Below, in pieces: positions 1-56,681 of a DNA stretch of 64,000 bases. Below the pieces are notes generated by a model. The model worked only from the letters and a program-made list of their open reading frames with translations. It made no database searches and had not been told where the DNA came from. The stretch is from Eukaryota sp. TZLM1-RC. Lineage: Eukaryota > Protista > Metamonada: BaSk clade. The stretch's first letter is position 1. Each line of letters begins with the position of its first letter. The stretch is taken from NCBI GenBank assembly GCA_040285825.1, contig JAUPSS010000004.1:2336550-2400549 (forward strand), given 5' to 3'. The translations under genes and the position numbers were made by a program.

Positions 1-760
1 CTGCACATCAGTTGTTTCTTTTTCTCCAACTACATGTCTTGCTTTTCGTGTTTTGTGACTATTAATATAGACACGCAATAATTGTGAATTGATGCAACTA
101 CTCAAATGGAAATTGACAGAAATGAGATCTTCCTAATACTGCTGGATTTAAATTGCGTCGCAAAGATTAACAGTGTTCAGACCCACATCCGTAGTAATTT
201 AAAGGAGTAAATGCAATAAATGCTGCAAAAATAACTGAATAATGCTTACAATTCCGTAAAGCGTAATTCCATTTATGATGTGTTTGTTCAAAAATTTGAA
301 CTTTCAGCATTGTTGTATTTATTTTGCGTAAAAAAGGGTCGAACTTAATTTTTGACTCCTGTACCCTTGAATCTTCTTCTGATGTCAAACAGGGCAACCC
401 CTGGCATTTTGCTTTTTTTGTTTGGCTATTCACATTACTATTGAAAGGGCCCGAAAATCTTTTCCTGAATCGAGTATTGTTGTTTAAATGGAGATTTTTC
501 CCCTATCGATTCTTTCAAAAACATTTGTAGGGTTTCTGAATTTAGTGTTAACAAATACAAATAAATTAAATTAGCTTCGAACCCAAACAAATTTCTGTTG
601 ATTGGTAGAGAAATACACAACATATTTTGACGCTAAATGGTGTAGACATGACATTCATTCATTTTGACCAACAAGCTTCAATGTCGGCTTGGTAATTTGG
701 ATGAAATTGATTTGCAGTTGAAAAATTTATTGCTAAGGATCTAATTTTTTGAAAATGAAT
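1..760 (-). mobile_element. Degenerate N-terminal part of a Fanzor family C element (runs off the window start)
   Basis: Near-identical to 26184-26945, which continues on the minus strand into the Fz-C RuvC-I ORF 25620-26099. Assignment of this part is by contiguity only. Confidence 0.5.
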
Positions 761-764
761 GAAA

Positions 765-1520
765 AAGCATTTGTTAAACAACGAATAGAAATAACCGCAC
801 AATTGAAGCTCCACATCCTCAAAACATGTAGCTCCCACATCGAAGCAGTTAATTGCTGAAGATTCGGAAAATTACCAAAATGAGAGTGAATCAAAAATTG
901 GTTTCACCATTCCCTTAAAAATAAAAAAAGACAATCCTGTTTTTGCCAGTAAACACGATTGAAAATTCTTCCAATTCTTACCTTTACAACTACATCAAAA
1001 TCCTCAAGGAAAGCCATAGCAGCCTTACCTTATGATCCGAGCAAAGTAAAAAAACAAAGGGACATAAATTATATTGGACATGAGAATTTTCATTGACAGA
1101 AGAAATTAGTTCCTCGTATTTATTTAGCTATTTAGTATTTTTCGCCTACAAGAAGAGGATTATTGACATCTGAATTAATGAAATGGTCGTTAGAAGAATT
1201 ACAAGGGTCGATGCACGTGGCATCTAAAATGGTAAACCTGCCATTTAAGCCGGAAACAACCAAATTACCTCTTGTCAGACTTATAGAAGCTCTATTGTAG
1301 CGCGTACTATCAATAGTGGGACCATCAAGACTTAATTTTGATAGCAGAGGCTCTAAAAAGGAATCTACTCGATGAGATTTGCACATTACATGAATTTGAT
1401 CCCTGACATTATAAAGTATTTTAATTCTAAATGTAATTAAATGTTTTCAGTTCAAAAGATGAGCAAACAAAAGATGTTTACCACATTTACATGTTAAATG
1501 AGAAGGCAAATTGTTTGGCC
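765..1520 (-). mobile_element. Non-LTR retrotransposon RLE-2, 3' fragment (zinc knuckle + restriction-like endonuclease)
   Basis: ORF 1132-1386 (RGNLVV..ILDATCIDP..GEKY) is homologous to 34180-35109 and 23850-24353. Confidence 0.85.
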
Positions 1521-3134
1521 ATGAGGAACAACAAAAACGTCAATTCAAAAACTTGTTTTTAGTTGATGATAGAGATTTTTTGAGTTCTTTGTTTCATCAT
1601 CCTGAAAATATTTCAGACCTTCTGAATGATGAATTCTTCGATTTATGTGAACAACATGATAGAAGAAATAATGAACTTAGAGACATAATTGAAGGTCTTA
1701 TTGAGCCATTTACTTGTCAAATTGAGAATTTGGTCACTGACGAGAATTTAGTTGATAACATATTTCCAGTGGATATACATTTTCTTGCAGACGCTGTTGA
1801 AAAAGATCCTCAAATATTCATCAAACCAGCAATTGCAATTGCTCAATATATTTCCAGTTGAGAGAGAAAACCTTATCATATTTCTCCTGTTTCAACTACT
1901 GTAGGCCTTGGATATTTTCCTATTGATACAAGAACAATAAGGAGAATTGTTAAACAAACATTAATTGATGATTTATCATCTACACAGACGCTGAAAATGT
2001 CCAATACACTAGCCCAAATTACGAAATTCGAACTATTTCAGCAATTTGACTTATGGTCTAACATTCTCGATTTAAACCAACCAATGTTCAAACAGAAGAG
2101 CTATAAATTCAACAACATTATCCACACAGATGGATTTAATATTGCAGTAGAATTTGTTCGTCGGGATTTACAAGGTTAGAAATGTAAGCCAGACAACAAG
2201 GCCAGTATTTCTGATTTATATATTGCTGATGTTGATGTGATACTTTTCAAGACAAACGAATCATTGTTTGTGATCCTGGAAAACGTGATTTATTGTATTT
2301 TGGGAGTAAAAAGACTGATCAAGAATTAACATGAAACTGAACAGCAAAGAAGTAGTCAGGTGATGAATCAAGACATGAAATTCAAATTGTTGAGAATGAC
2401 TCAGACGTCCTGGTCTTTGAAAAGTAAGATGAATGAACAGCAAAAACGATGGGCGACAAAGTATACTGAGGTAGATGACGACAGGAACCAAATGATAGAA
2501 ACCGCAATGACAATTGAAAATGCAGACACCGAATTATCCTCGTTTGCTGCCAATTCATCAGCTTTTATAGATTTTTCCAACTTTGTGGTTGCCAAACTTC
2601 GGCAAGTTTTTTTGACAATTGACTTTTACAGTCTTCACTTGTGGAGCATTCATAAAATCCAAGCTTTTATTCACAAGCAAAAGACTGAAAGTTGGTTGTT
2701 AAAAAATCTTGTTCAGCAGTTTGGCAATCCAAAAGTCACTTTAATACTAATGGGTAAAAAAGGTTCCAAGAATTTGAAACATCAGAGGCCTACTCGTGGC
2801 ATTGGATGGATTCAATTTCTAAAAAGGAATGGACTTGAAATATTGATGATTAATGAAGCTTTCACTTCAGCAAAATGTCCTGTTTGTTTTGAAAAGGTTG
2901 CTACGTTTTTGAGAGTCGCAAAGCCTAGATTCTATAGAAGAGAAAAGACTCATGTTACTACATGTCATGGTTTATTAGCTTGTAATAGTGAGAGTTGCAA
3001 ACTCAGTAACAAAGGCTCAACAAAGCTTTTCAATAGAAATAAGCTGGCTTGTCTGAATATGTTTGCAATTGCTGAAGCCAGAATGAGTGGTAATGAAAGG
3101 CCTAAGTATCTGTACTTATGGGAATTTCCAATAA
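1521..3134 (+). mobile_element. Fanzor family A copy 1, 5'-truncated pseudogene
   Basis: HTDGFNIAV, RuvC-I IIVCDPGKRDLLY (~2260-2300), INEAFTSAKCPVC, CHGLLACNSESC, FNRNKLACLNM, ERPKYL. Has stops and frameshifts. The 3' end TTATGGGAATTTC is shared with copies 2 and 3. Confidence 0.85.
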
Positions 3135-3164: not shown

Positions 3165-4943
3165 ATGGATCTCCTGGAGCTTCAATCCAGGATCTACAAG
3201 GATCCAGACTCTTATCGACTTGACTTTGAACAGCAACTTTCTGCTTTGGATGCTCATCTAGACATTCTTCGTTTACAGTCTCAATCAGACAACAAGCATC
3301 TATGCAACCTTATCGGATTCCTCTCTCAAACCTCAGGACCTTATCGTGATAGTCTTGCCAAGGATCTTCCCACAAAGCTATTTTCACTCCTCGACAATGC
3401 GTCAATTATGAACTCTGACGTTCGCCTAGCCCTCGTCCGTGCAATCTTTACCATGCGTGCCAAGAGAGTTACCGCCGCAGACCCTATCACCATTTCCAAG
3501 ATTGTTGTACCTTTTCTTTCCTTCCCAGATAAGGCCCTCAGAGCAACCATCGAGTCCTTCTTTATCAGAGATCTCAAGACGGTCCTACGAAAGAAAGACA
3601 AATTAGCCAGGGGGGTTCAACAAGTTTTGCTATCGCCACTCAACAATTGTGATTCACTAGCTTCAACTTATAATGCTCCCTTTTTCAGATCATTAGTAGA
3701 CATAGCCATTCGCTTGTTCAAATCCCACATCTGGAAAGATCAGCCGACTGCCAATGCATTAATGAATGCTACAAGTTGCACATTTTCCAAGGCTAGTGGT
3801 GCGGCCCTTTCGTTCTTCTTGGCAGGTAGTGATGGTGTTGATGACGATGAAGAGGAAGGGGTGGAGAAGCCAAAAGAGCAGTCCTTTGTAAAGCAAACCA
3901 AAAGGAGAAAGCGGCTGCATGAAAAGGCGTTGGTAGAGCATAAGAAAGCCCTGAACAAAGAACCAACTGCACATTCCCTTTATAATCAGGAAGCGATCGA
4001 TTTGATTTATGACCCCTGTGATGCAGGTCGGAAACTAGTAATCATATCACGTGACAAGTCAAAGGGTTTCTCACCAAGACAACGTTTGATGTGTCTACAG
4101 GTAGCTTCGTTGTTATCAAGGCGTCACGAAGTCGATGTTCCTGGATTTTACTCTTGTCTTATCAATTTCATTCAACCATCAACAAATGACGTCACTGTTG
4201 CCCTAGCTGCGGTGTCTCAAGCCGTGCATCAATACAGTGCTGTGGAGAGCGTTTCGCAAGTGGTGAGAGCGATTGCTGATAGGTTTATTTCAGATAGGAA
4301 TAGAGACGAAGAGATTGCTATTGGTATCACTGCTATTAGAGAGCTTACAGTTAGATGTCCCTATGCGATGGATGCGACTCTTTTGAGTGATTTGATTCAG
4401 TATGTGGATAGTAGGGATAAAGGGGTGATAATGGCATCACGGTCTTTAATCCAAAGTTTTAGGGAAGTTGCTCCTGAACTGTTACCTAAAAAAGCCAGAG
4501 GTCGACCCCCAAAAAAGGAAGGTGAAAGTGACCGGGAAACTGATGACGAGTATGATGATTCCAGTAGTGATGAGCATGACGATGTTCCACTTGTTGCGCG
4601 TGAGTTTCTTGAAGAAGGCATGGGAAAATTGGACAGTGGTTCAGATGGCGAGGACCGAGTGAATGATTTATCAATGTTTGACCTTCCAAGAAAAAAACCG
4701 CATTTATCAAAAGAAGAAAGAACTATGCATGCCCATGGTGGGGAGAAATCTTGGTTGTCAAAAACTGCCATCAAAGCTATGAATAAATCAGGAGGTTCAA
4801 CAAATAAAGAAAAACAAAAGAAAAAGAATTATGCAATGGTTAGGAATTCTAATAGTAAACGCAGGCAAAAGTTAGCGGCAGCTGGGTTGAGAAGTAGACA
4901 AAAACATGCATCAGTTCTTAGGACACGTAAACTCAAGAAATAG
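3165..4943 (+). CDS. SDA1: SDA1 / SDAD1 60S ribosome biogenesis and export factor
   Basis: 592-aa ORF. N-terminus LLELQSRIYKDPDSYRLDFEQQ, central ELTVRCPYAM..LLSDL..DKGVIMASRSLIQSFREVAPELL, basic C-terminus with STNKEKQKKKNYAM. Confidence 0.9.
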   Translation: MDLLELQSRIYKDPDSYRLDFEQQLSALDAHLDILRLQSQSDNKHLCNLIGFLSQTSGPYRDSLAKDLPTKLFSLLDNASIMNSDVRLALVRAIFTMRAKRVTAADPITISKIVVPFLSFPDKALRATIESFFIRDLKTVLRKKDKLARGVQQVLLSPLNNCDSLASTYNAPFFRSLVDIAIRLFKSHIWKDQPTANALMNATSCTFSKASGAALSFFLAGSDGVDDDEEEGVEKPKEQSFVKQTKRRKRLHEKALVEHKKALNKEPTAHSLYNQEAIDLIYDPCDAGRKLVIISRDKSKGFSPRQRLMCLQVASLLSRRHEVDVPGFYSCLINFIQPSTNDVTVALAAVSQAVHQYSAVESVSQVVRAIADRFISDRNRDEEIAIGITAIRELTVRCPYAMDATLLSDLIQYVDSRDKGVIMASRSLIQSFREVAPELLPKKARGRPPKKEGESDRETDDEYDDSSSDEHDDVPLVAREFLEEGMGKLDSGSDGEDRVNDLSMFDLPRKKPHLSKEERTMHAHGGEKSWLSKTAIKAMNKSGGSTNKEKQKKKNYAMVRNSNSKRRQKLAAAGLRSRQKHASVLRTRKLKK

Positions 4944-5688: not shown

Positions 5689-6578
5689 ATGAAGCTTCAC
5701 CTACGAGGTCTTAACCTGAAACTTTTTCAAGGTACGTTGCCTTGAGTGTGTTAGCTTTCTTTAGATGTACTTCGTAGTTTTCGCAGCTGTTCTTCCATTA
5801 ATCTCCTCTTCTGTGGCACTTTAGATTCCCCAGATGACTCGTTTTCTTTAAAAATAGCCTCAAAAACTGATGCCAGCAATGCATTTAAAACAGTGGCAAC
5901 TCTCTCCCTGGTATGTTTTTCTTTTCTCTCTATTTACTCTAGAAATCGTTATCACAGTCTACCAAAGTTATAGCTCTTAATAACAATGTTATTGGTATTT
6001 CTGTAAAACTTGCAAACTTCCAGGAAGCGTTATCCCACGAAGACGATGATGTCACTTATGATCTCTTACTATCAAAGTCAGCAATGGTTACGAGACCTGC
6101 ACTGTCCATTAAGAGTAGCAAATCCGAAAGAAATGTCCCTGTCTCCGTCTTAGATAGCAATGAAACCAATGATTTGTACAATTTTAATTTATCAAACAAT
6201 TCATTTGCAATGTCATTACAGTGTTCACTATCCGTTTGCATGCATCTTATAGACTTTGTGCAGAAATCTAAACGATGCAAGTTTGAGTCCATTGAAGTCA
6301 AGGCTACTTCTGATGGTACCATGTGTCTTTCCGTCAGCAGTGTAGGGGATCAAATGGACTATACAATCAAAGGACTAGGCGTGGAGAAGGAGGAAGATGA
6401 TGAAGTTGAAGCCTATTTTGATGTCAAGACTTTTGAAATGTTACTCTCCCCTCTTAAGAGCAACCCTCTGTCAACTCTCCTTGTTCTGAGAACAGCTGGA
6501 GATGTTTGTGATGTAGTGGTTCATCTTGAGGGAGGAAAGATTATTTCCAGAGCTAGTCAAAAAGTATTTGGTTCATGA
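5689..6578 (+). CDS. HUS1: HUS1-like 9-1-1 checkpoint clamp subunit, 3 exons (5689-5731, 5765-5910, 5943-6578; 274 aa)
   Basis: Removing GT-AG introns 5732-5764 and 5911-5942 gives one open frame from MKLHL joining ORF 6084-6578. Motifs ALNNNVIGISVKLANFQEAL and PALSI...RNVPVSVL, and the length, fit Hus1. Confidence 0.7.
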
Positions 6579-8590: not shown

Positions 8591-9844
8591 CTATTGAAAA
8601 AAGGACATAATTGAAGCATAGGTACAGTTCACCATCAGAAGCAGACCAACTAAAATTATAAATCTTGCCACCACCCTCTTAAAACCTACGTTTTCCATTC
8701 CTTTTGTACATTTAAGATAAAATAAACCAGGAAAAACACAGGTGATGAAGAAACCAAAAAGAGAACCAGAAACCCTAATTACTTTGGTTACGGATTCCTC
8801 CAAAATTGCAACAGCAACCGAAACACTGATGATACTAGTAGACAACACAGCCTGCCTTCTTCCCGCTTTTTCTGGTGATAAATCTTTAATGAAAACATTC
8901 TGGATCCCATTTCTTAACCCAAAACAAACCAAGGGAAATGATAAGGCTATTGACAAACCCATAATAGCTCTACCAAAAGATGCTGCAATGTCACCGCTTC
9001 CATAGTTATTCAGTATATCATCCTTAGTAGTACTTCTAAATGTGACATAACCAAGAGTGGCTGCCGAGCTATACAATACCAGACAAAGAGTAACAGAAAA
9101 AAAGATGACAGCCCTAAATTTTCGTACTGATCTCTGTTTGAGCTCCTGATACATTTTTGGAATGTTGTAATGAGCAGTAAAAGAGACCCCCATAAGAGGA
9201 AGAGCTGCAAACAACTCAGTGGAAAACTTGAAATATTCGATTTCACCACGTGGCTCATAGATTACAAAAGTGTTGGTGTAAAGCCTATACCCCATCATTA
9301 AAATGAGATAGATTGGACAGAACAGTGACGCAGCTGATGTATAGCGGAGAGCGTCGATGTTGGGAAGTAAGCATAGTGGGAGGAGGATCAGTAAAGCAGT
9401 GGCGATAATGAGCACCCTGCGATCAAAGAACATTCTATGTGCGGTAGCAGGGAGAATAAACTGGCTTAGGGACGGCATAAAGTCTCCGAGGATGACACAA
9501 TAGCTTATGCATGTTCCTGCAGTGTAGCAAACAATAAGACTCTCTACAACAGTGCCAAAGGATTTCCCCAGTGTCTTTTTGGCGATACCTTTATAGCTAT
9601 ACTCATTAGTATGAGCACAGCACTCGGACAGAAAAGAAAAAGAAAATGCAGATATAAGAGCTACCAGAAGAAGCAGAACAAGTCCGCTGATGAGCCCAGC
9701 ATATAGAATAGCATAGGACAATGTAAGGACAGCTGCGCCCGTGATCGCGTTACTGACGTTGGCGACAGATGAAAACACTGATGCGCCTTTAGAGTCGTCT
9801 TCAGGCACAGCATCATAATTGATGAGCAATTGTGACGATGACAT
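8591..9844 (-). CDS. AAAP / SLC38-like amino-acid transporter
   Basis: 417 aa, about 11 hydrophobic helices, SVANVSNAITGAAVLTLSYA, SFTAHYNIPKMYQEL, LGYVTF..DILNNY. Confidence 0.9.
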   Translation of the reverse strand: MSSSQLLINYDAVPEDDSKGASVFSSVANVSNAITGAAVLTLSYAILYAGLISGLVLLLLVALISAFSFSFLSECCAHTNEYSYKGIAKKTLGKSFGTVVESLIVCYTAGTCISYCVILGDFMPSLSQFILPATAHRMFFDRRVLIIATALLILLPLCLLPNIDALRYTSAASLFCPIYLILMMGYRLYTNTFVIYEPRGEIEYFKFSTELFAALPLMGVSFTAHYNIPKMYQELKQRSVRKFRAVIFFSVTLCLVLYSSAATLGYVTFRSTTKDDILNNYGSGDIAASFGRAIMGLSIALSFPLVCFGLRNGIQNVFIKDLSPEKAGRRQAVLSTSIISVSVAVAILEESVTKVIRVSGSLFGFFITCVFPGLFYLKCTKGMENVGFKRVVARFIILVGLLLMVNCTYASIMSFFQ

Positions 9845-9889
9845 ATCTTCCAGGTCGATGTCTAATTTTCACAAGTTCAATACTTACTA

Positions 9890-10231
9890 CTGTGAATTTC
9901 ACTTATCATGCATTCCCCTGTGAAATTCACTCCTGTTTTCAACTTTCTCAATGTCTACTCACATGCTGTAAGAGACATGTAGCATCATTTGACAAAGACA
10001 ATCATGATCTTCATCAATGGGCTACCTCACTTAAATACACCCACTGCTTTCACAAAACAAAGCCTCGCGACTTGATGTATCTAACTGGATCTACCAAATG
10101 CTACTAAGGTATTTGTAGATCGGTCTCAAAAGTTGTTCAAAAAAATCAATAATAAAATAAAAAACTCAAAATAAAATATCAGTTTTTCCAAAGTTTTTGT
10201 TGCTGTATGCTCAGATTCCCCATTCATCTCC
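9890..10231 (-). ncRNA. Putative omegaRNA region of Fanzor C
   Basis: Non-coding 3' segment conserved with ~56716-57030. Its position downstream of the ORF matches Fanzor/TnpB omegaRNAs; boundaries are uncertain. Confidence 0.55.
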
Positions 10232-10483
10232 TCAACAGAGCTTCTTGGCAAATGTATCTTCTGGCCACAATTCCGCTTTCTTCTTAATTTGAATAATTTT
10301 TGCAGCGGAAATATCTCTGTCATATACTATTTGACACTCAGTACAAATACGCATGTGCCATGAGCCTGTTTGAATATTCTCGGCTATGCAACAACTTGAC
10401 AGTTTTCTTGTATTAAATTCACCGGTAGACAAGTGCTTCACGTCCTTTTGATAACACAACCATTTTCTGAAACCCCTTGCTGA

Positions 10484-12048
10484 TGTTGGCGCCTTTAGGC
10501 TTAAATAGAATAAGGGCAAAATAAATCAACTTTATGTCATGCACTTTATGTCAATCATCTTTATCTCAACCACTTTTGCAACCTAAGGCAACAATAATTA
10601 TTGGCCGTATTAGGTTATAGGTATACCGCTTACACAACTTACAGCAATCAAACAGAGGATATCTTCAACAGATATCATGTCAGCCTCTCCTCGCCAGGAC
10701 ACTGACTCTAGTCGAATTTTTTACATTGAACACATGCAACAGTACGACAGAGATGCTTTGAGCATACATACAACATCAGTAGGGACTGAAGAGTCAAATA
10801 AAGAAGAGGATTCGGGCTCGAGACCACCCTCCGCCCCTCCTCATGAGAAAGATATGGAACCAGGCACGGAACCACCTCCCGCCTTTTCATGTCCAACAAA
10901 TCAGATTAAGGTTTCAAGAACGGGACCACCCCCTCCTCACCTAAAGAAAATGTTGGGTTAAGCTCAGATACTTCGTCTGCTCTAAAGGACTACTAAGAAC
11001 TTCAGTCCGTCTTAGAAGAAATGGACGACGAAGAGAAAAAGCTTCGCCAACAGATAATGAAGGACACGGAAGCGCACCTTGAACCTACAGATTACTGTTT
11101 GTTTCAGCAGCTCCCTCCTTTATGGAAGCAAATCCAAAAGAGAGGTAGAAACGTTGGATTTCAAACACTGGAAATGAGGCTACGGGTATAGGACTCCTCC
11201 TCCATCAAACCGACAACAAAAAATCGGGTTACGAGGGTTCTAGTGTAGTATCCTCCTCCCCCACTCAATGTACGAGGTTACGATTACAAACTCCACCTCC
11301 AACAATAATGAATTACAAGGGCAGATATACGGAAGTTGCTCCCTCCCCCCTTCCTTTTTTAAAAAAAATTAAGGTTAAGTAATGGGATACAGGTACAGTC
11401 ATCGAGCTCACCTCTTCCAGCGAATGGGAACGACGATGTATTTTAACCCTCCCACTTTAACAATTTTTGTAGACAGGCAGTACTTTAAAAACAAATGATG
11501 CCTTTTTCAGATTTTTGAACTTCGTTACTTTGTTTACTGTTGTTTTCAGTCCATCATAGACCCTGCATATTTATTAGCGAATCCATTATTCGATTCCATA
11601 ATATCTTTACTAAACGACACTACCACGTTACTCGTCTACGAAAAAAGGAAAAAGCAGAACGTCATTATGTAACGACTAAAGCTAATACAACAAAGTATTC
11701 AAACACATGGATCTTGGAACCAGTTCTTTTACGTTATAGCTCACTCCTTTATTCTACATTATTGTTAAAGGGATATAATACATCAACTATCAAGAAGTAA
11801 GACCCGTGTTTTTGTGAATCCAGTGCGAAAATAATAGTAGACATCAGGAAACATTAGAAATTAGTTATTAGTATTTTGTATATTTATAGTTTAGTTATTA
11901 GTTTAAAGTTAATTAATTTTGAAAAAGGGAAGAAGTAGTGTTGGCGCCTTTAGGCTTAAATAGAATAAGGGCAAAATAAATCAACTTTATGTCATGCACT
12001 TTATGTCAATCATCTTTATCTCAACCACTTTTGCAACCTAAGGCAACA
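10484..12048 (+). mobile_element. Non-autonomous (TRIM-like) LTR retroelement
   Basis: Identical 110-bp LTRs 10484-10593 and 11939-12048 (TG...CA), 4-bp TSD CTGA, polypurine tract 11921-11938, no pol. An empty site is visible in the Fz-C copy at ~57280. Confidence 0.93.
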
Positions 12049-13119
12049 CTGATTCATATCGATTGACTTTTCGGCAATGAGAAGGGAAATTAGCAGAACC
12101 CACAGCAAGGTAGAGTTTTTCAGGATGTCCAGCCAGCCTTTGAAATTTGTTGAGACTCTCTCTGAACCGTCTCTCTTTTCGTCTGCGGTTATCAAATTTA
12201 ATTATTTTCCATTTTGGCGATTACTTTCCAAGTACACTTTCCTCCTGACCAAATTCCAATGGTTCAAATATTGGTTGAAATTTTGAACGGAATATTGGTT
12301 GGGAGAGTGTTTACTGGGTGAAGGTTTTGTCATGTATCTTCTGCCAGTTGGACAACCGATAACTCCACATTGATTATCATTTAAGAAGTAACCACATAAT
12401 CTAGATTGGCCCAGATCAACGCCAATAAGGTTCATTTCAGGTAAAAGTTCGACTGGATGTCTACGTCTTCGACGAGGCATTTTTTTAGTGCCATACTTAC
12501 TAAAATTATCCATCAATAATAACCTTTTTTGGGTTTCCAAAATCATCAGAACACATTGAATAAGTCAACATGCGGTCTGTGTTCTTCTCGATCAGAAATA
12601 TACTGTGTACATTCATTAATATTCTATTCCAGAAACTTATGTTGAACTACATTGCCTATATCTTTGAATAATGCTCAAACTCACGTTCCCAGAACACTGC
12701 TTGGAAAAATGCCATCTGTACTTGTTTGATATTCTCGAATTCAATTAACCATCATCAGTAGATTACAATTGTTGTTTCATCAAATGAGACTTATTATAGG
12801 TCAAGCGAGCCAGGAATTCAAAGGGGAATCTTGGATGAATACATTTCATCTTATTTCTTCCTTGTGTATTTTGTTAAATGTTGAAAGTTCAGTACAAAAT
12901 TTATGAGATTGACTCAACACAAGATTTCATCTATTATCCGGGACAGTTTGATTTCAGACTTGTCCAAACCAAAAAAATACTGCTATAGTAAAAAAATTAA
13001 AAGACATTCGTATTAGTTCTGCTGCTGTTTTAGTTATTCAAACTCTCTCCATTTGAGGACTTAATTTAAAAAGCAATGAATAAGGGTCGATAGACATAGC
13101 ATTTAAAATAGTTCAGCTT

Positions 13120-16503: not shown

Positions 16504-17640
16504 GTGTGAATTTCTAACAAAACGCACTTCTGGCTTTTGACCAATTCATGCAATCTTGATAGACGCTAAGCATACTTTAGATCTATCACTATATGATATC
16601 ACGATCAAATGATAGTTAAAGCAGCAACATCACAATACGCGTACTGGCATGTAATACATGGAAAAACACTTATCTATGGGGTCTCCGGAACGCCTCAGGT
16701 CTTTCATTGTGGTAGTGCTCACTTATGGCAATCTCCAGTTGGTTTCTGGAAGCCGAGATGTCCCTCGACCAGAGTGTCTGACATTGAGGGCATACAAACT
16801 TATCATTGTTCACCCTCCCATCATCGTGATACAACTTTTGATTGAACACCTTACAGCAATTCGTTTTGGCAGATGTGTAGAATTCATCTCCATTAGGCTT
16901 CACAAATGTAAAATGTTTCTGAATCTCCTTCAAAAAGCGCTTCCTTGGGGTTTTTACAGCTTGTCTTGATGGACCATCACCTCCACTGCCAAACCAAATT
17001 ATGGTTTCTCTTCCATTAACCATTAGTTTAATGTTTTCAATAAATCCCATTATTATTTTTTGCCTTCTTATAAAAAAATCAAACTTGTTGCGGCGCAGGG
17101 CTCGGCGATCTCCATTTATCAGCAGTTGGTCTATTATAGTTCTCGGACGGAAGTCGGGATTGCTGATTTCTTGCTGTGTCGGTACCCACATCAAAGGCAT
17201 TGCTATTTCATTAAGATATTTGTGTAAATTCTTAGCAAAATAGCAATTTGGTGATGCATGGGTCAGGACCGGTGGGTGAATGATCTTCCTTGCCTTTGGA
17301 TTCAGAACAAGGCCCGAAAGTTGATGATCAACATTGTTATTATCAATTCTTGATCCAATTGAATAACCACACAAATTTTTGTGATTAGGATCAATTGCAC
17401 AAAATGAATATTCAACTGGATCAACTGGCGGAGGCTCATAGGCATCGTCAGTTCTTCGTCGTTGCCTTGGACGGACCTGTTGTTGAAGTCTACAGTTTCG
17501 CTTCCGACTCTTTGCAGGTATATCGAGTTTTCCACTGGCTATGGTGGTTGCCAATTCTCTGGCTGTCCGGCGATTCTTTTTTGGGGGGGGGGGGGCAAAA
17601 GAAAAAGTGAAGCGGACTGAAAGAGCATCTCAACTGATTC
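16504..17640 (-). mobile_element. Fanzor family B copy 1, 5'-truncated (RuvC half + 3' non-coding end)
   Basis: ORF 16670-17554 is nearly identical to the C-terminal half of 59653-61566. The 3' non-coding region is shared up to GAAATTCACA. Confidence 0.92.
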
Positions 17641-18059
17641 TATATCTCCGATTCCAATAACTACTTGACTTGGATCACCAATTACTGATTTGAATTTCTG
17701 AATCATCTTCATAACCTACATTTCAAACACAGCCAACAATGTTGTTGACCTTGCTGTTGAATGTAATAGCCTCTTCTACATTATCAGTTACAGTGCAGTA
17801 TTCTTAGGTTGGTATTCTCAGGTTTTTTGTTTCTGTCGTGGTGGCGATGTTTCCAGAATCGAGGTCAAGTCATGGAAGGGCTGAAATTCCTGCACTTCAG
17901 GATGAGAATAGGCTGTTATCAAATCAGATATTAGTCTTGCTTCATGTAGCAGGTGGCATCCACTGGTGTCTGTTAGAGATGGCAATTACTCGAGTAATAC
18001 TTGAGTAATGCTCAGTGTTCTAACAAAGTCAGTATTAGTCAGACCATTTGATGTAAAAG

Positions 18060-25624: not shown

Positions 25625-26945
25625 ATAATTTCTGCCAATTACTTTCCAAATACACTTTCCTCCTGACCAAATTCCAACGGTTCAAATATTGGTTCAAATT
25701 TTGAACGGAATATTGGTTAGGAGAGTGTTTACTGGGTGAAGGTTTTGTCATGTATCTTCTGCAAGTTGGACAAGGAATAACTTCACATTGATAATCATTT
25801 AAGAAGTAACCACATAATCTAGATTGGCCCAGATCAACGCCAATAAGGGGCATTTCAGGTAAAAGTCCGACTGGATGTCTACGTCTTCGACGGGGAATCT
25901 TTTTAGTGACCTTTAACTGTGTTTCTCTGGTTTTGTTGGCATTAGGGTCACTTTTCATTTCTTTATTTGATCTTCTTTTCTTTTTCGGTGGTTCATCCAG
26001 CTCATCTGTGTTTTCTGAGTCATTATTTTTACCTTCAAAGGTCAAAAGCATTTCATTACCATTAGCTTTCAATAAAAAAATTTTAAATCTATTTTTCAAA
26101 CTTTTTCTGTTGATATTGAATTATTTTCAGTCAATTTTCAGACGAGGAGTGAACAAAGATTTCAAAGATGCAGGATACAATGCCTGCACATCAGTTGTTT
26201 CTTTTTCTCCAACTACATGTCTTGCTTTTCGTGTTTTGTGACTATTAATATAGACACGCAATAATTGTGAATTGATGCAACTACTCAAATGGAAATTGAC
26301 AGAAATGAGATCTTCCTAATACTGCTGGATTTAAATTGCGTCGCAAAGATTAACAGTGTTCAGACCCACATCCGTAGTAATTTAAAGGAGTAAATGCAAT
26401 AAATGCTGCAAAAATAACTGAATAATGCTTACAATTCCGTAAAGCGTAATTCCATTTATGATGTGTTTGTTCAAAAATTTGAACTTTCAGCATTGTTGTA
26501 TTTATTTTGCGTAAAAAAGGGTCGAACTTAATTTTTGACTCCTGTACCCTTGAATCTTCTTCTGATGTCAAACAGGGCAACCCCCTGGCATTTTGCTTTT
26601 TTGTTTGGCTATTCACATTACTATTGAAAGGGCCCGAAAATCTTTTCCTGAATCGAGTATTGTTGTTTAAATGGAGATTTTTCCCCTATCGATTCTTTCA
26701 AAAACATTTGTAGGGTTTCTGAATTTAGTGTTAACAAATACAAATAAATTAAATTAGCTTCGAACCCAAACAAATTTCTGTTGATTGGTAGAGAAATACA
26801 CAACATATTTTGACGCTAAATGGTGTAGACATGACATTCATTCATTTTGACCAACAAGCTTCAATGTCGGCTTGGTAATTTGGATGAAATTGATTTGCAG
26901 TTGAAAAATTTATTGCTAAGGATCTAATTTTTTGAAAATGAATGA
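25625..26945 (-). mobile_element. Fanzor family C copy 2 (N-terminal part to RuvC-I; 3' end lost)
   Basis: ORF 25620-26099 with PPKKKRR NLS-like patch and LIGVDLGQSRLCGY. Confidence 0.75.
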
Positions 26946-28854
26946 AAAAGCATTTGTTAAACAACGAATAGAAATAACCGCACAATTGAAGCTCCACATC
27001 CTCAAAACATGTAGCTCCCACATCGAAGCAGTTAATTGCTGAAGATTCGGAAAATTTACCAAAATGAGAGTGAATCAAAAATTGGTTTCACCATTCCCTT
27101 AAAAATAAAAAAGACAATCCTGTTTTGCCAGTAAACACGATTGAAAATTCTTCCAATTCTTACCTTTACAACTACATCAAAATCCTCAAGGAAAGCCATA
27201 GCAGCCTTACCTTATGATCCGAGCAAAGTAAAAAACAAAGGGACATAAATTATATTGGACATGAGAATTTTCATTGACAGAAGAAATTAGTTCCTCGTAT
27301 TTATTTAGCTATTTAGTATTTTTCGCCTACAAGAAGAGGATTATTGACATCTGAATTAATGAAATGGTCGTTAGAAGAATTACAAGGGTCGATGCACGTG
27401 GCATCTAAAATGGTAAACCTGCCATTTAAGCCGGAAACAACCAAATTACCTCTTGTCAGACTTATAGAAGCTCTATTGTAGCGCGTACTATCAATAGTGG
27501 GACCATCAAGACTTAATTTTGATAGCAGAGGCTCTAAAAAGGAATCTACTCGATGAGATTTGCACATTACATGAATTTGATCCCTGACATTATAAAGTAT
27601 TTTAATTCTAAATGTAATTAAATGTTTTCAGTTCAAAAGATGAGCAAACAAAAGATGTTTACCACATTTACATGTTAAATGAGAAGGCAAATTGTTTGGC
27701 CATGAGGAACAACAAAAACGTCAATTCAAAAACTTGTTTTTAGTTGATGATAGAGATTTTTGAGTTCTTTGTTTCATCATCCTGAAAATATTTCAGACCT
27801 TCTGAATGATGAATTCTTCGATTTATGTGAACAACATGATAGAAGAAATAATGAACTTAGAGACATAATTGAAGGTCTTATTGAGCCATTTACTTGTCAA
27901 ATTGAGAATTTGGTCACTGACGAGAATTTAGTTGATAACATATTTCCAGTGGATATACATTTTCTTGCAGACGCTGTTGAAAAAGATCCTCAAATATTCA
28001 TCAAACCAGCAATTGCAATTGCTCAATATATTTCCAGTTGAGAGAGAAAACCTTATCATATTTCTCCTGTTTCAACTACTGTAGGCCTTGGATATTTTCC
28101 TATTGATACAAGAACAATAAGGAGAATTGTTAAACAAACATTAATTGATGATTTATCATCTACACAGACGCTGAAAATGTCCAATACACTAGCCCAAATT
28201 ACGAAATTCGAACTATTTCAGCAATTTGACTTATGGTCTAACATTCTCGATTTAAACCAACCAATGTTCAAACAGAAGAGCTATAAATTCAACAACATTA
28301 TCCACACAGATGGATTTAATATTGCAGTAGAATTTGTTCGTCGGGATTTACAAGGTTAGAAATGTAAGCCAGACAACAAGGCCAGTATTTCTGATTTATA
28401 TATTGCTGATGTTGATGTGATACTTTTCAAGACAAACGAATCATTGTTTGTGATCCTGGAAAACGTGATTTATTGTATTTTGGGAGTAAAAAGACTGATC
28501 AAGAATTAACATGAAACTGAACAGCAAAGAAGTAGTCAGGTGATGAATCAAGACATGAAATTCAAATTGTTGAGAATGACTCAGACGTCCTGGTCTTTGA
28601 AAAGTAAGATGAATGAACAGCAAAAACGATGGGCGACAAAGTATACTGAGGTAGATGACGACAGGAACCAAATGATAGAAACCGCAATGACAATTGAAAA
28701 TGCAGACACCGAATTATCCTCGTTTGCTGCCAATTCATCAGCTTTTATAGATTTTTCCAACTTTGTGGTTGCCAAACTTCGGCAAGTTTTTTTGACAATT
28801 GACTTTTACAGTCTTCACTTGTGGAGCATTCATAAAATCCAAGCTTTTATTCAC
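26184..28854 (+). repeat. Segmental duplication copy 2 (partner 1-2674)
   Basis: Direct sequence identity with the window start. Confidence 0.95.
26950..27701 (-). mobile_element. RLE-2 3' fragment (duplicate of 765-1520)
   Basis: ORF 27313-27567 is identical to 1132-1386. Confidence 0.85.
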
Positions 28855-29323
28855 ATGCAAAAGACTGAAAGTTGGTTGTTAAAAAATCTTGTTCAGCATT
28901 TTGGCAATTCAAAAGACACTTTAATACTAATGGATGATTATGGTAAAAAAGGTTCCAATATTTTGAAACATCAGAGACCTACTCGATGATGATTAATGAA
29001 GCTTTCAAATCAGCACAATGTCTTGTTTGTTTTGAAAAGGTTTCTACGTTCTTGAGAGTAACAAATCCCAGATTATATAAGAGACAAAGGAGTCCAGTTA
29101 CTACATGTCATGGTTTATTAGCTTGTAATAGTCAGAGTTGCAAACTCAGTAACAAAGGCTCAACAATGCGTTTCAATAGAAATATGCTGGCTTGTCTGAA
29201 CATGCTTGCAATTGCTGAAGCCAGAATGAGTGGTGATGAAAGGCCTCAGTATCTGTGTAGTTGATAGTTTTTGTAATTACTCTGCACAAAAATTGATCGT
29301 GAACTTATGGGAATTTCACATAT
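27702..29323 (+). mobile_element. Fanzor family A copy 2, pseudogene
   Basis: Same motifs as copy 1; ~46-nt deletion at ~28985; 3' end CTTATGGGAATTTCACATAT. Confidence 0.85.
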
Positions 29324-35503: not shown

Positions 35504-35575
35504 GCGATTGTAGTATAATGGTAAGTACTCTCCGTTGTGGCCGGGGTGATCCAGGTTCGATTCCTGGCAATCGCA
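35504..35575 (+). tRNA. tRNA-His (GTG)
   Basis: Acceptor GCGATTG/CAATCGC + A; anticodon arm CTCCG-TTGTGGC-CGGGG; T arm CCAGG-TTCGATT-CCTGG; followed by a TTTTT Pol III terminator. Confidence 0.96.
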
Positions 35576-35831: not shown

Positions 35832-35963
35832 AAATTTATTGCATTTGCACACTTAATTAAATTAACTCATAACTAATGGGACGACAATCATTGAACCAAG
35901 ATTTCCTCTACAAAATCTTGATCTGCTTGCTGTCTAGCTAAAGCTTCTCTTATTCGATTGAAG
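35832..35963 (-). mobile_element. Very short RLE-1 3' end capping the Gypsy element
   Basis: Reverse complement of ~25490-25618. Confidence 0.85.
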
Positions 35964-38900
35964 ATGATTTGAGGATTAAACATCCAACTTCGAATAGCAG
36001 GTTACTCGTGCTTGGCTTCTCCTCCGGCGATTTCGATGTTTGGGTGATTTCTGCTTTTTCTCGTTTTCTTTTCAATCGATTAAATTTAGATTGGATATCC
36101 AGAATGAAAGGAACCTCAGTGGTAGCCTTTTCGATGGTGGAGAAAATTGATAAAGGGTCAGCTCTGGGACTGACGTCTGACCCAAACAAAAGCTCGAATG
36201 GACTGAAACCTGTGACAGAGCTCTTAGACGAATTCGTTAAGAGTTGTACGTAAGGTATGTATTCTGACCAGTTGTCAGAGGCGTTAAAATCGATTAGGAG
36301 CTTCCTAAGATTTTGTAAAATGACTCTATGACGTCGTTTAACTAGGCCATTTGATTGACTGAAATTTGGAATACTGTTCGTCACGTTGATATATAGGAAT
36401 TCGCACAGTGATTTAAACACGTTGTTGGCGAATTCTGGGCCGTTGTCACTGTGAATGCTGTAAGGTATACCGAAGATTGCGCACACACTCCAAATCAAAG
36501 CGTCGGCTGTCAGCCTTGCGTTTAATTCTTTGAGGGGCACGAGGATTGTATACCGAGTGAAACTGTCCACGAAAACTAAGATGTACGTATTGGCCTCTTG
36601 ATCTGCAGGAAGAGGACCAATGGTATCCACGTTCAATCTCGCGAAGGGTTTGTCAGCCCAGAGAGATCTGGTGGGAGGAGTGATAGATTTGGGGACAGGT
36701 GCCGTTTTCTGACATGATGGACAAGAACGCACGTGGTTCTTCATATCATCAGTCATACTGGGCCAGTAGTAGTCGCTAGAGGATAGCCTGCGTAAACTCT
36801 CAGACATACTAGGATGACCGCCTGATACATAACCATGTATGATCAAGAGCGTGTCGTTGATGAGTTTTGACGGGATGATGATCTTGCCTGATTCGTTAAC
36901 GTAGAGGTCAAGATGATTGACGGAACAGTTATTAAATGAACGTTCGTGAGCTGCAACAGCTTGTCTTTTCTCTGAACGGATTCTACTCAACCAAGGATCG
37001 AACATGGGGATTGCAGATGCGCATTTCTCTTTTAAAATGAGGATTTTGTGGGTATCCCGAAGGTCGTCTAGGTCTGGGAGAGCAGAGTCGTCTGATGGAT
37101 TATAGTTTCTGATATAATAGATTGGGTGAAACGGTTCATAGGTGGTCTCGCTCGCTGATGAACGAGTGTTGCCTTTGTTGATTGTGTTTATGCGTACAGT
37201 ATCGGTCGTTGGGACCTGTCTGGATAGCATGTCTGCCCAGTAGTTGTCTTCCCCCGAGGTGTGTACCAACTCGAAGTCGAACTCACTGAGTATTGGTAAC
37301 CAACGTGTGACAATTCGATTCTTATCAGGGGCTGTTACCAGATATGAGAGGTTCCTGTGATCTGTGAATATCGTGAGCTTCCTGCTTTTAAGGTAACTCT
37401 CGATGCATGATTCTGTTAGGATGAGAAGTATAGCGTAAAGCTCTTTCTGCATCGTTGACCAATTCTTTTGGGAATTGGAGAGAATCCTGCTAAAGAAACT
37501 GATAGGTCTGACCTTACGGTCAATGAGAGGAGTGCCATTGTGTTCACAAGGATCATATTCTTCCCAAATGACGCCGCCAATAGCAATGTCTGATGCGTCA
37601 CAACTAATAAGGACACGGTTATCTGCTGGGGGTAAACTCAATGGCATATTCTCTTTTACGAGTTGCTTGATCTTGTTGAAGCGGAGTTCATGATCTGAGG
37701 TCCACTCGATACGGCGAGGGTTTCCTCTAGTAAGCTCGATGATAGGAGATATGATTTCGGATACCGAAGGCAGCCAGTCTCTAATGTAGTTGATGGATTT
37801 TACAAAACTTCTGACGTCTTTCACTGTCTTGGGAGCTGGAAGCTCGACTAGTTCAGTTAGTCGTGAGGGATCAATTTGGCGTGTACCATTGACGAAGATA
37901 CTGCTAAGAATCTTGATTTCATGATCTTTAGACTTGAAATGGCATTTTGGTAGGCCAAGGCTGACCCGCTTCTCTTTAGCGCGGAAGAGGATGGCTTTGA
38001 GCCTGTCGATGAATTGAGGAAGGGTATTACCTATGATAATGATATCGTCGATGTAGATAAACATGCCTTCGATGCTAAAGATGTTGGACATTACATTTTA
38101 AACACTGCGGGGACGTTCTTGAGACCGAAACATGCCCTGTTGAAGCTAATACTGCGACCAGGAATGCTGAGGGTGGTTTTCTCGATGTCTCTTTCGTTGA
38201 TCTTGAGTTGCCAAAATGCTTTTGGGAGATCAAGTGTTCCAATGTAATTGGCTTGAGATAAGAACTCTAATACATCAGAGATCTTTGGAAGGTTTGGAGC
38301 GATAGGGATAGTGTTCGCATTGACTCCATTCGGACCACTGAAGTCGCCTGTAGGACGTGGTTTCCGATGATCAGGATAAACTACAAGGACGACTGGGGAG
38401 CTCAATCTACCGTTGGATTCTGTGGCGAAACCAGATTTGATCAACTCATCGAAGATTTGGTTGGCGATTTTGAATCGTTCAGGGTTTAACCTGCGAGGTG
38501 GACGATAAACAACAGTGTCTTCATCGTAGAAATCGATGTCCATGGGGTTACAGTCGATGCCGTCTTCATGGGGTTTCAACGTGAAAACATCTTTGAACTC
38601 TTCGAGAGTTGCGAGGAGCTGTTGATTTTCTGATTGATTGTTGAGCTTTATTTGACAACCTGACGAGTTGACGTGATCTTCGAATGTTTTTGACACCTTA
38701 AAATCAGATGTCTGTGAAATTCTGTGGTCAAACTCAGATTCAGGTAACATTAGTGTTCTGTGAAGCTCGTCGAGATGAATGTATACCCTGTCGTTGTTCA
38801 TGAGGCCGAGTTCATATAGAATGTCTATTCCTATAATTAGAATGTTGTTGCCTGGCACGATTGGTAACGATTTGGTAAGATGCACAACTTTGGAAATGCT

Positions 38901-40707
38901 ACCGACGTTGAAGGATAGGATTCCTTTGGCATTGCCGTCAGAGTTTGATGGTTCTCCGTTAACACCAATGAATTTGACAGATTCAGTGCAGTGTTCCATC
39001 TTGCATTTTGTAGATAGGTCTTTCGAGATGACGAATATGGATGCCACGCTATCAATAAGACCAGATACCTCTATGTTATTAATCTGCAACCAAAGTTCAA
39101 TAAACTTGGGACAATTCATAGATTTATTGGCACAAACAGAAGACAAACTAAAAATTCTATTGGTATGCGAAGATTCAGGGTCACATGTGCTCAAAGGCTT
39201 TAAGAGGCGTTTGGAGGGATTGCGAGTGATTGTAGGGAAACAGCGAGAGGGGCTGTCCCTGATTTTGGTGGTGGACTCGGATGTTGTTTTAGGCATGCTA
39301 AGAAAGTCGAAATACACCGCGTTAGATGGGAGAAGGATGGGAGGAGAAGTGTCGAGATCCGAAACAGACAAATCTCCAGAGAGGGGTTTGGGGATGGATG
39401 GATCAGGAGAGAGAACTTGACTCCTGGGTACCCAGAAACCGCATGGGTTACTGTCTTCATCCTCACCGTGAACAGCCACTTTCTTTTGACGAGAAGGTGT
39501 GGGAGTGGTTTCGGGATTAACTGGGAGACTTCTGAGAGTAGGAGGGTTATCCAACGAGTTCCATACTCTTGAGAGCTCCTGACCGTAAGCACTACGAACG
39601 GCGAAAACTTGGCCTGGATTAGGTTCCACTGCTGATTCCCTGTCCAGACGGAATGGATAGAAATCCATAAGACACTCTGGGTCTGGATGAGTCAATGGAT
39701 CATAGGGTTGGGGCATCAGCAAGAACTTAAAGTTGTCCCCATCCTCTTCAACCGAAGGAATCCGAGGAGGAGACTCGTTTAAGAACATCTGGATCATGAA
39801 CTGCTCAAAGTGGTCCTTAGGAGCACGAGTAGCAAGTTCTGCCTTTAAGGCGACTAGATCCAGGAAGTACCATTGTTCTAAATCCCTACGGAATTTCTCC
39901 AAGGTATACTGCCACTTAGATTGAGTAGGAGTAGATACCTTGGGAGAAGGAGAGGAGGGACGAACCTGACCAGTAGAATCTTTCGACTCCTTGGAAGCCG
40001 TAGAGGTAGACTCCTCTTTCGAGGTGTCTGCGTTGGCTTCTTCGGGAGAAGAAGAATCCTTGGCAGGAGTAGGAGGGTCCCCCCCTGAATCCTGAGGATT
40101 GGTGGCGAGATGGGAGTCGGAATCCCTACGGCCGAGATTGGTTCCACCCGGAGGTGAGGCTGCATCCAGAGGAGCCTGTTGTTCGTTAGCCGAAGAACGG
40201 CCAATAATTATTGTTGCCTGTGGGCCAGAGTCAGACATATATGTGAACAAATAGTAATTTTATTACGACGAGAAACGAGCTATAGTGAATTTCAATACCA
40301 TCACTAGTGAGGTCTCCATGAATAAACAATGAACATTAAGCTATAAACAAGAATAAATAGATAAGTCTATCTACACTCTAGAATAGTGTAAAGACTAACA
40401 GTAGTGCCTCTACAGACTGTCTTTTGTTAGTTATCTCCGCTAGTCTATTTTATGGGATCCAATGTTTTATAGTCAATGAGTGAGGATCGCATTGAACGGA
40501 ACCTGTAACGAAGTCAAAACACTGGCGTGTTTCTTGTTGAATTGTCATTCCCCCAGGTTAGTGTAGCTATAATAGAAAAGTCAAGAGTTCCACCATGATC
40601 ACAGGCGAACTCAGATATAGATGAACGAGGAGTGGAAGGTTCTTCGTCAAAGAGAGAAGGAAATGGGAAGGAAGATAGAACGGGTGTTGTGACTTCCCTT
40701 GGTAACA
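35964..40707 (-). mobile_element. Ty3/Gypsy LTR retrotransposon, decayed, 3' LTR missing
   Basis: Order PR(IDSVAS)-RT(LDLPKAFWQ, YIDD)-RH(CDASD)-IN(HHCC, VDTIGP, SDNG) in ORFs 38091-40250 and 35950-38091. The 5' LTR ends at 40212 (AGGCAACA); its start is at 40707 (TGTTAC) or 40400, uncertain. Confidence 0.9.
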
Positions 40708-49844: not shown

Positions 49845-51210
49845 AACATTTTTAGTTCCAACTTTAATCATATAATTCGATCCAGAAATGCTCTTGTCAC
49901 TAGGCCTTTGGCCCAGAAGTTTTATGAATTATGTGCTAAAGTCTTGTAAAATTACTAGGATGTAAAATGTTCCAGATTCCAGATCATGCTTATCTTAGTC
50001 CACATTATGGCGGTCTAGGTTGGACAAAAGCTTCTATTCTTACTTCATTTGCTGTATTGGTGGATGTAGAAATGCAATTTTTGAGTTTTCTGAATATTTT
50101 GCCGATTGGAAAGATTGATTAATGACAACGCAAAGTTCTACTATTTGCATTAAATGATGAGATTTCAAAAATTGAGGTAGAAAAAAAAGTCGACTTTCCC
50201 CAATCATTCAATGGTAATATTCCAGAAAAGAATCTTTTAAATTTAAAATACACTATTCGAACATTACAGAAACGATTGACTGGAATGTGAAAATGATCTT
50301 TATAATAATATATGCAGCTCGGCTGTTTCAAATCAAGATCTTCACTCATTGTTATTGGAAAAGGGTGTTTGTGAAAATAAGTCATCAGATTCTTCACTTT
50401 TTGTAACCATTATAGCACGAAGATTTGGATTGTGTGCCACTAATGAAGCATTTGTAACAACAATGAGATTATATTTGAATATCCCCATTAATCAATTATT
50501 ATCAAAAGAAAAATGTATTTGTTCGAATTCACCTCAGCTCATTTTGCGACATGCTCTGAATTGTTCGCAATTGATAATTTATCGTTCTTCATTACATGAT
50601 GCTGTTAGAGACACTGTTTTCAATATGGCACAAACTGCAAGAATATCGTGTATCAAAGAGCCTCTGCTGAAGGAAACACTGTCTTTGAATAATTTTGGTT
50701 CTGATGATAGAGGTGATGTATACTGTGATTGGATTGAGAACTCTGAAGCTGTTGTTGACTTTGTCTCATGTAATGTTGCAAATGACACTTTGGTTCAAAG
50801 AAGAAAACTTAATCCTGTAAGTGCTCTTGAAGTTAAAGCTAAAGAAAAACATAGAAAATATGACAAAGATATCGAAGAAGCTAATGTTGATAAGAATAGA
50901 CCATTTGTCTTTATTGCTTTCCCATTTTCGATAAACGGAAGACCATCAGTAGAAGCAGAAACTGTTTTGGATGGTTTCCTAAAAATGGTTCAAGAAAAAA
51001 CAATGAAAAAATTTGATATTTTTTTATGGCGCTCTCGGATTCAATTTGCCACTATCAATAGATTACCTCTTTTTTTCAATCGAATTAGAAAAGCTTTACC
51101 TAGACATCAAGCAGTTCAAGATCTTGTAAAGGAAACCTTAGTTCACTGAATTTCGTCCCATTAGTTATGTGTTTATTTTGTAAAGTGTGCAAGATGAATA
51201 AAAAAATGTT
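49845..51210 (+). mobile_element. RLE-1 copy, 5'-truncated
   Basis: ORF 50349-51149 (knuckle + endonuclease), homologous to 24771-25564. Confidence 0.9.
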
Positions 51211-51229
51211 TAAAAAGTTAAACATTTAT

Positions 51230-54848: not shown

Positions 54849-54870
54849 TGCGAGGTAATTCAAAAAATGT

Positions 54871-56614: not shown

Positions 56615-56681
56615 ACTAAGAACTTGTCGCAAAAAGTTGGTGTTGCCGATTTCCATTTTGAAATGGAAATAAAAACGGAAA

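Follow-up and report, generated by a model that had tools for sequence, protein, structure and literature searches.

The 64,000 nt of DNA analysed here, called the window throughout, correspond to positions 2,336,550 to 2,400,549 of contig JAUPSS010000004.1 in assembly GCA_040285825.1 of Eukaryota sp. TZLM1-RC, an isolate that we take to be Skoliomonas litria. S. litria is a free-living anaerobic metamonad, one of four genomes sequenced. The window is dense in transposons and its G+C content ranges from 31 to 45%, lying mostly between 33 and 39%. At 9880-12502 it contains a 5'-truncated copy of a Fanzor element, copy 1 of family Fz-C, inserted on the minus strand between the two copies of an exact 10-bp duplication. 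The way in which this copy and its relatives arrived is the subject of this study. Three Fanzor families were compared in a sample of 21 copies from ~200 kb of sequence, the window being supplemented by 12 further loci of the same assembly (numbered with L) picked via annotated protein fragments. Positions within elements refer to one reference copy per family: L007 4941-7345 for Fz-C (2405 bp), window 58429-61732 for Fz-B (3304 bp) and window 26184-29320 for Fz-A (3137 bp). The copy 1 locus is organized as follows:

8591 to 9844, minus strand: host amino-acid transporter gene (PF01490, E = 3.5e-63).
9880 to 9889: target-site duplication ATACTTACTA, beside the 3' end of the element (exact 10-mer; null 0/20,000).
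9890 to 10483, minus strand: 3' segment of Fz-C copy 1, comprising a Zn-ribbon/TNB and RuvC-III coding remnant and a non-coding tail ending in GAAATTCACAG; matches reference 1880-2404.
9890 to 9930, minus strand: terminal hairpin with an 11-bp stem, its arms being a doubled GTGAAWTTCAC motif (z = -2.8 as DNA, -3.5 as RNA).
10484 to 12048: nested non-autonomous element of the long terminal repeat (LTR) type, a later and unrelated insertion (1565 bp; ~110-bp LTRs).
12049 to 12492, minus strand: 5' segment of Fz-C copy 1, starting just before RuvC-I (..LIGVDLGQ..) and frameshifted; truncated at reference position 1436 of 2405.
12493 to 12502: target-site duplication ATACTTACTA, at the truncated 5' end (exact 10-mer).

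The two occurrences of ATACTTACTA coincide exactly with the junctions of the Fz-C fragment. On the 3' side the last base of the element (9890, minus strand, ...GTGAAATTCACAG) directly adjoins one repeat, and on the 5' side base 12492, equivalent to position 1436 of the 2405-bp full-length Fz-C, adjoins the other. Longer Fz-C copies, namely 25628-26125 in the window and those in L003, L004, L005 and L007, run on 5' beyond this truncation point, and their similarity to copy 1 stops abruptly at 12492 (12485 for L005). In a control using random position pairs 0.9-3.4 kb apart in the same DNA, a direct repeat of at least 10 nt within 5 nt of both points was found in 0 of 20,000 pairs, and widening the allowed distance to 25 nt raised this to 0.29% of trials. 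Since the repeat adjoins both homology boundaries and was never matched by chance, ATACTTACTA is a genuine target-site duplication, as a preliminary description of this DNA had claimed; copy 1 was inserted de novo, already 5'-truncated and non-coding, at a target site that had been cut with a stagger, as the duplication shows. The alternative, a fortuitous 10-bp repeat beside a copy truncated by later deletion or rearrangement, could appeal to the surrounding nest of transposons and to the lack of a duplication at most other truncated copies, but it is extremely improbable given the chance control, the exact placement of the repeat at both boundaries and the presence of duplications at three further Fanzor copies. 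An origin of the repeat as a splice-site artefact was likewise rejected: the minus strand carries a 5' splice-site-like string, GTAAGTAT, which is treated as a coincidence because the other duplications lack it.

The Fanzor-derived DNA of copy 1 amounts to ~1.03 kb (9890-10483 and 12049-12492) of the 2.6-kb span because 10484-12048 is the nested LTR-type element. On this point the preliminary description, which had not set the nested element apart from the Fanzor copy, needs correction. The nested element has TG...CA termini (TGTTGG...GGCAACA) and is flanked by a 4-bp duplication, CTGA, at 10480-10483 and 12049-12052. It is not found in the other Fz-C copies, and in Fz-C copy 2 the corresponding site is uninterrupted (57279-57283). 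A 23-nt stretch spanning its LTR end and adjoining internal sequence is identical at 40197-40219 within a Gypsy-type element; this element, at 35950-40250, is likely its autonomous partner. A 116-bp internal direct repeat was considered as the mark of a Fanzor intron and rejected, since it is the LTR pair of the nested element.

Translation of copy 1 yields RuvC-I (..LIGVDLGQ..), a frameshift, and then the Zn ribbon and RuvC-III (..YDRDISAAK..). The RuvC-I and RuvC-III motifs thus stand in their proper order, in agreement with BLASTX matches to family-B proteins that are weak yet consistent. The C-terminal open reading frames (ORFs) of Fz-C match PF07282 at 32.2 bits (L007) and 26.9 bits, above the cutoff of 26.3, and the Fz-B match, at 26.2 bits, falls just below it. 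At least the N-terminal half is missing from copy 1, which is also frameshifted and interrupted by the nested LTR-type element, and so contains no intact nuclease ORF. All Fz-C frames examined (copies 1 and 2, L005 and L007) are frameshifted, and in the protein search the family is represented by fragments only. Fz-C is a dead family that nonetheless spread, and its own nuclease therefore cannot be the integrase. The Fz-B2 element in the window retains an intact 637-aa Fanzor ORF without an intron, and the proteins of the window's intact Fanzor are 82-94% identical to NCBI entries of Eukaryota sp. TZLM1-RC.

The remaining Fz-C and Fz-B copies discussed from the window are:

25628 to 26125, minus strand: Fz-C copy X, extending 5' of the truncation point of copy 1, its 3' part cut off by a restriction-like endonuclease (RLE)-type retrotransposon ending at 25622.
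56659 to 57444, minus strand: Fz-C copy 2, which lacks everything 5' of reference 1705 and diverges at its 3' end.
58416 to 61745, plus strand: Fz-B2, a 3304-bp element (58429-61732) flanked by an exact 13-bp duplication, TAAATATCAATCT; its 3' end is also GAAATTCACAG.
16505 to 17652, minus strand: Fz-B copy truncated at reference 2159, with the common 3' end and no significant duplication (6-mer only).

Across the sample the 5' ends of the three families, in reference coordinates, are scattered:

Fz-C, nine copies: 1, 1, 25, 294, 629, 1221, 1436 (copy 1), 1516, 1705.
Fz-B, nine copies: 1, 510, 592, 610, 892, ~949, 963 or less, 2159, 2460.
Fz-A, three short copies: 2068, 2093, 2155.

The 3' end, where preserved, always falls on the same base. 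Five Fz-C copies end identically, and seven of the nine Fz-B copies end within a few bases of a common terminus, the exceptions being L009, which has lost the last 30 nt, and L006, a rearranged fragment. The terminus of Fz-C forms a hairpin with an 11-bp stem that closes 2 nt before the 3' end; such a terminal hairpin would also be expected in an omegaRNA. The ~200 kb searched contain no solo 3' tails of the three families, the 3' flanks of the Fz-C copies show no mutual similarity, and Rfam and tRNA scans of the window returned only a tRNA-His (35504-35575). The 5' 0.5 kb of Fz-B2 is not common to the eight other Fz-B copies examined, and the idea that this leader belongs to an RLE element was rejected because no similarity was found. 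The 5' junction of Fz-C copy 2 shows a 9-nt overlap (TTTCCATTT, plus strand) that recurs at 56650 and is not significant on its own.

For each full-length Fz-C copy ~90 inverted-repeat pairs were listed, and none of the 25 longest involves the 5' terminus; a direct comparison of the 5' 16 nt with the last 100 nt in reverse complement gave no such repeat either (p 0.87-1.0). Window ORFs of at least 150 aa gave no Pfam match to a DNA transposase, the related matches being only to reverse transcriptase, RNase H and integrase of retroelements. Three statements of the preliminary description are borne out by these data: that terminal inverted repeats are lacking, that the window contains no transposase, and that most other Fanzor copies retain the 3' end but not the 5' part. 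A fixed 3' end together with scattered 5' ends and duplications of variable length excludes both DDE cut-and-paste and IS200/IS605/IS607-type transposition for these copies. A DDE element is rejected on the absence of terminal inverted repeats and on duplications that are not of fixed length (10-13 bp), and an IS200/IS605 or IS607-type element on the presence of duplications, the scatter of the 5' ends and the lack of a TnpA or serine recombinase ORF in the window.

Several rearrangements accompany these copies. In L003 (feature 9674-10276), an inverted Fz-C segment (at 9674-9792; reference 1203-1301) adjoins a sense segment (from ~1596), and the sense segment is itself split by a ~276-bp insert with a ~11-bp duplication. 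The inverted/sense geometry is that of twin priming, and may also reflect a DNA rearrangement. A 3.1-kb segment consisting of Fz-A with a nested RLE2 element is duplicated at 97% identity (1-3113 and 26184-29256); the match begins at the first base of the window and probably continues leftward beyond it. Within the conserved 5' leader of Fz-B, 59128-59265 (minus strand) contains an antisense ORF that by eye resembles leucine-rich repeats, which suggests a captured host gene fragment. A Fanzor C-terminal fragment of another family lies at 42856-43383, upstream of an ORF at 43590, and shares 51-56% identity with P0008-P0011; in place of its 5' part stands an RLE2-type element, whose terminal poly(A) run is at 42848.

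A further regularity concerns position. In most copies examined (nine listed) the Fanzor 3' end lies 10-80 bp upstream of a start codon of a host gene on the same strand. For copy 1 this is the transporter ATG, 45 bp downstream of the element. The pairs of 3' end and start codon are:

Window: 9890/9844, 16505/16481, ~3113/3165, 29320/29399 and 53075/53122.
Further loci: L001 8071/8084; L002 8081/8145; L003 7367/7433; L006 7198/7238.

The terminal motif of all three families contains TCACA (9890-9900, 61722-61732 and 29310-29320), which we take to resemble the TCAYW initiator of Trichomonas. As a lead only, transcription of the host gene downstream may start from a site provided by the end of the element.

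Eighteen Fanzor copies were scored by one method against an empirical null, under which 0.33% of random pairs score at least 10. Significant duplications were present in four of the 18 (10, 10, 11 and 13 bp), with ~0.06 expected. These are copy 1 (10 bp); Fz-B2 (13 bp, at 58416 and 61733); L007 (11 bp, including 5 nt of possible microhomology); and L008, an Fz-B copy with a 10-bp duplication, GAAAATGACC, at 4214-4223 and 6555-6578, in which a 14-nt A-rich stretch lies between the element end and the duplication and a few filler bases are found at the 5' end. Two of the four are the longest copies. In L005 a 7-mer sits precisely on the 3' junction and 4 filler bases are found at the 5' junction, which is suggestive and not significant. 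The remaining 13 copies gave nothing above chance, also with mismatches allowed; mismatch-tolerant scoring brought no gain over the null, three copies scoring 7 against ~2.3 expected. A search for displaced duplications, comparing the first 22 nt of the 3' flanks with 6 kb upstream, gave only chance-level 8-13-mers in irrelevant places. The duplications are real, variable in length and found on the longest and the truncated copies alike, but they are exceptional. The alignment of junctions proposed in the preliminary description thus returned the constant 3' end, the scattered 5' ends and the variable lengths (10-13 bp) that it had anticipated, and no duplication at most of the truncated copies. 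A general lack of duplications at truncated copies was one of the observations that the description itself had said would speak against it, and such duplications were found at only two of ~13.

RLE-type retrotransposons in the same sequences served as a positive control. Among 17 independent copies, seven scored at least 10 and two scored 8-9; the duplications measure 8-16 bp and are preceded by A/T-rich tails of 0-22 nt. Two copies in the window illustrate this class:

49852 to 51215, plus strand: 5'-truncated RLE1 retrotransposon with a 12-bp duplication, AGTTAAACATTT, used for comparison.
54844 to 56620, plus strand: RLE1 retrotransposon with an 8-bp duplication, AACTTGTC, with the 3' end of Fz-C copy 2 on one side and the host uracil-DNA glycosylase gene on the other.

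In the uracil-DNA-glycosylase-like gene (54015-54863, minus strand), the first ATG of the listed ORF lies inside the 5' end of this RLE1 element. The Fanzor duplication lengths (10-13 bp) fall within the range of the co-resident RLE elements (8-16 bp). All six RLE duplications aligned at the junction begin with A (window 49840, 54836 and 23849; L004 ~5707; L005 ~8718; L008 ~7232), and those of Fanzor do so only when the base that follows CACAG (T or C) is counted as part of the element; the comparison of first bases is ambiguous because this base can be assigned to the element or not.

One exact 3' terminus (the hairpin and ...GAAATTCACAG) combined with scattered 5' ends means that copying begins at the 3' end, whereas the point at which it stops or is joined varies. 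The pattern points to a copy-in process starting from the 3' end at a staggered nick. The route that we favour, while holding it tentatively, leads through RNA and the reverse transcriptase of the RLE elements. Fanzor RNA would serve as the template for target-primed reverse transcription, with the reverse transcriptase and the endonuclease both supplied in trans by the abundant non-LTR retrotransposons of the RLE type, in the manner of short interspersed elements (SINEs) or processed copies. The Fanzor nuclease itself would play no part, as Fz-C is pseudogenised in every copy seen. Besides the lengths of the duplications, the A-rich stretch of L008, which resembles the short A/T-rich RLE tails, is consistent with such a route, as are the filler nucleotides at the 5' junctions of L005 and L008, the 5 nt of microhomology in L007, the twin-priming-like inverted Fz-C fragment of L003 and a short likeness of the Fz-C tail to that of RLE1.

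Filler and microhomology at 5' junctions would also be produced if DNA were captured at a staggered double-strand break, made perhaps by an active Fanzor or by the RLE endonuclease, with copying from the donor's 3' flank, end joining and fill-in of the duplication. The many copies without a duplication fit this scheme as well, but it would need a target homologous to the 3' flank of the donor, and the Fz-C 3' flanks share no similarity; it also leaves the identical 3' base of independent events unexplained. We regard it as improbable.

A number of observations weigh against the RNA route. Duplications are found in 4/18 Fanzor copies versus 7-9/17 RLE copies of similar age under the same scoring, and only two of the ~13 truncated Fanzor copies have a significant one. 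No A-rich tail is present in copy 1, Fz-B2, L005 or L007. The last 16 nt of Fz-C align with the RLE1 tail (TAAGTG..AAATTCA) with p ~0.008, a likeness that fails correction for the 6 comparisons made, and the RLE tail folds unlike the Fanzor tail. By analogy with TnpB, the 3' terminus would be expected to be the boundary between the scaffold and guide of the omegaRNA, a natural right end for a DNA element but not the end of an RNA. The landing of Fanzor copies 10-80 bp upstream of same-strand start codons is not evident for RLE elements. Lastly, the CRe elements, which bear the same signature, contain introns (PMC3627910), and their signature was therefore made at the DNA level. The preliminary description had suggested that these Fanzors may spread through their RNA, SINE-like via the RLE reverse transcriptase or primed at a staggered break, or by another one-ended route; of this, the agreement in duplication length with the RLE elements stands, and an RNA intermediate is supposition, copy 1 being tailless and the likeness between tails marginal.

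The main competitor of the RNA route is a one-ended replicative transposition of DNA (rolling-circle or HUH-type), like that put forward for CRe-1/2/3, in which a nuclease acting in trans would nick at the 3' hairpin, a strand would be copied starting there, the 5' end would be resolved at variable positions and duplications would accompany some of the events. This has a published precedent for a fixed 3' end, 5' truncation and variable duplications of 7-19 bp, and the low fraction of copies with duplications fits the 10% reported for CRe-3 and the 57% for CRe-2 (PMC3627910). The precise hairpin-adjacent 3' terminus, conserved in three divergent families, suggests a sequence-specific DNA end. 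Nevertheless, apart from the 3' hairpin, the Helitron2 features examined are not seen here: asymmetric terminal inverted repeats are lacking (p 0.87-1.0 as above), as is a 5' hairpin (z = 0.25 and 0.20); the 5' ends begin with AACT and GTTT, that is with A or G and not T; a preference for TTTT is inconsistent, the upstream bases being ATTT, CCTC, AATT, CTAG and TGAC; the longest copies carry duplications too, unlike CRe; and no RepHel gene occurs in the window or the fetched loci, the whole genome not having been searched. We consider this DNA route somewhat unlikely. That the Skoliomonas Fanzors in general are retro-mobilised, their RNA being reverse-transcribed at staggered nicks by the RLE machinery, is possible though less likely than not, and is offered with reserve.

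How Fanzor-only elements without a transposase move is a question that has stood since 2013, and this genome offers a compact test case in which several Fanzor families lie beside very active RLE elements with duplications of the same size. A 2026 review found no evidence of Fanzor-carrying retrotransposons and saw no advantage in such an arrangement (PMC13565253). If the RNA route is true, it would overturn the view that Fanzors travel only in DNA transposons and viruses, would account for the multiplication of Fanzors that have no transposase, and would be the first known case of genes for RNA-guided nucleases spreading in the manner of SINE-like retroelements. If the DNA route is true, the 'one-ended' mode of CRe and MCi-2 would be extended to a metamonad whose elements lack the tested Helitron2 features. 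The pattern itself is already known either way; it is the RNA route that would be new.

The closest known systems are Fanzor1 elements. CRe-1, CRe-2 and CRe-3 of Chlamydomonas reinhardtii are frequently 5'-truncated with the 3' end almost always intact (Bao and Jurka 2013, PMC3627910), and their truncated copies are flanked by duplications of ~7-19 bp, which the authors read as one-ended rolling-circle transposition of non-autonomous Helitron2 elements (PMC3627910). Since truncation, a fixed 3' end and variable duplications were thus reported in 2013, the preliminary description was incorrect in taking this mode as undescribed for Fanzor; the signature is that of CRe-1/2/3 and also of MCi-2 from Mucor circinelloides, a Fanzor1 family that lacks inverted repeats, has duplications of 11-12 bp and varies in its 5' regions (PMC3627910). 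Like the Skoliomonas families, the CRe elements are Fanzor-only and non-autonomous, with duplications of variable length and a 3' terminal hairpin, and extra nucleotides sometimes follow their 5' duplication. They differ in having Helitron2 termini (asymmetric inverted repeats and a 5' hairpin), insertion after TTTT, introns, and no duplication at full length, whereas in Skoliomonas the tested Helitron2 termini are absent, the longest copies have duplications and the intact Fz-B ORF is intronless. MCi-2 recalls Fz-B2 in that its 3' regions are nearly identical and its 5' regions differ or are 'fuzzy'; it differs in its patterned duplications (ATAATTNNNN) and in a partial Crypton recombinase in one subfamily, neither pattern nor recombinase being seen here.

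Outside the Fanzors, SINEs, HAL1-type elements and processed copies likewise combine variable duplications, 5' truncation and a fixed 3' end with filler or microhomology at the junctions, and depend on the enzymes of another element, being mobilised in trans by non-LTR retrotransposons through target-primed reverse transcription. Compared with copies of the SINE type, the Skoliomonas Fanzors are mostly tailless, have duplications in a minority of cases and show a marginal likeness to the tail of the putative partner. The RLE-type (CRE/R2/NeSL-like) elements of this genome share duplications of 8-16 bp, 5' truncation and the same neighbourhoods, and occur also inside Fanzor copies; they differ in encoding a reverse transcriptase, in having AATAAA-type tails followed by short A/T-rich additions and in that about half of the copies keep their duplications. 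The TnpB-only IS1341 type of the IS200/IS605 family resembles the Skoliomonas Fanzors in consisting of a nuclease gene alone, without inverted repeats and with a right-end hairpin, and in that the guide would come from the flank; it has no target duplications and a defined left end, whereas in Skoliomonas duplications occur and the left end is not fixed. What sets the present elements apart is their metamonad host, the absence of the tested Helitron2 end features, the presence of duplications on the longest copies, and the co-residence of RLE elements with duplications of matching size.

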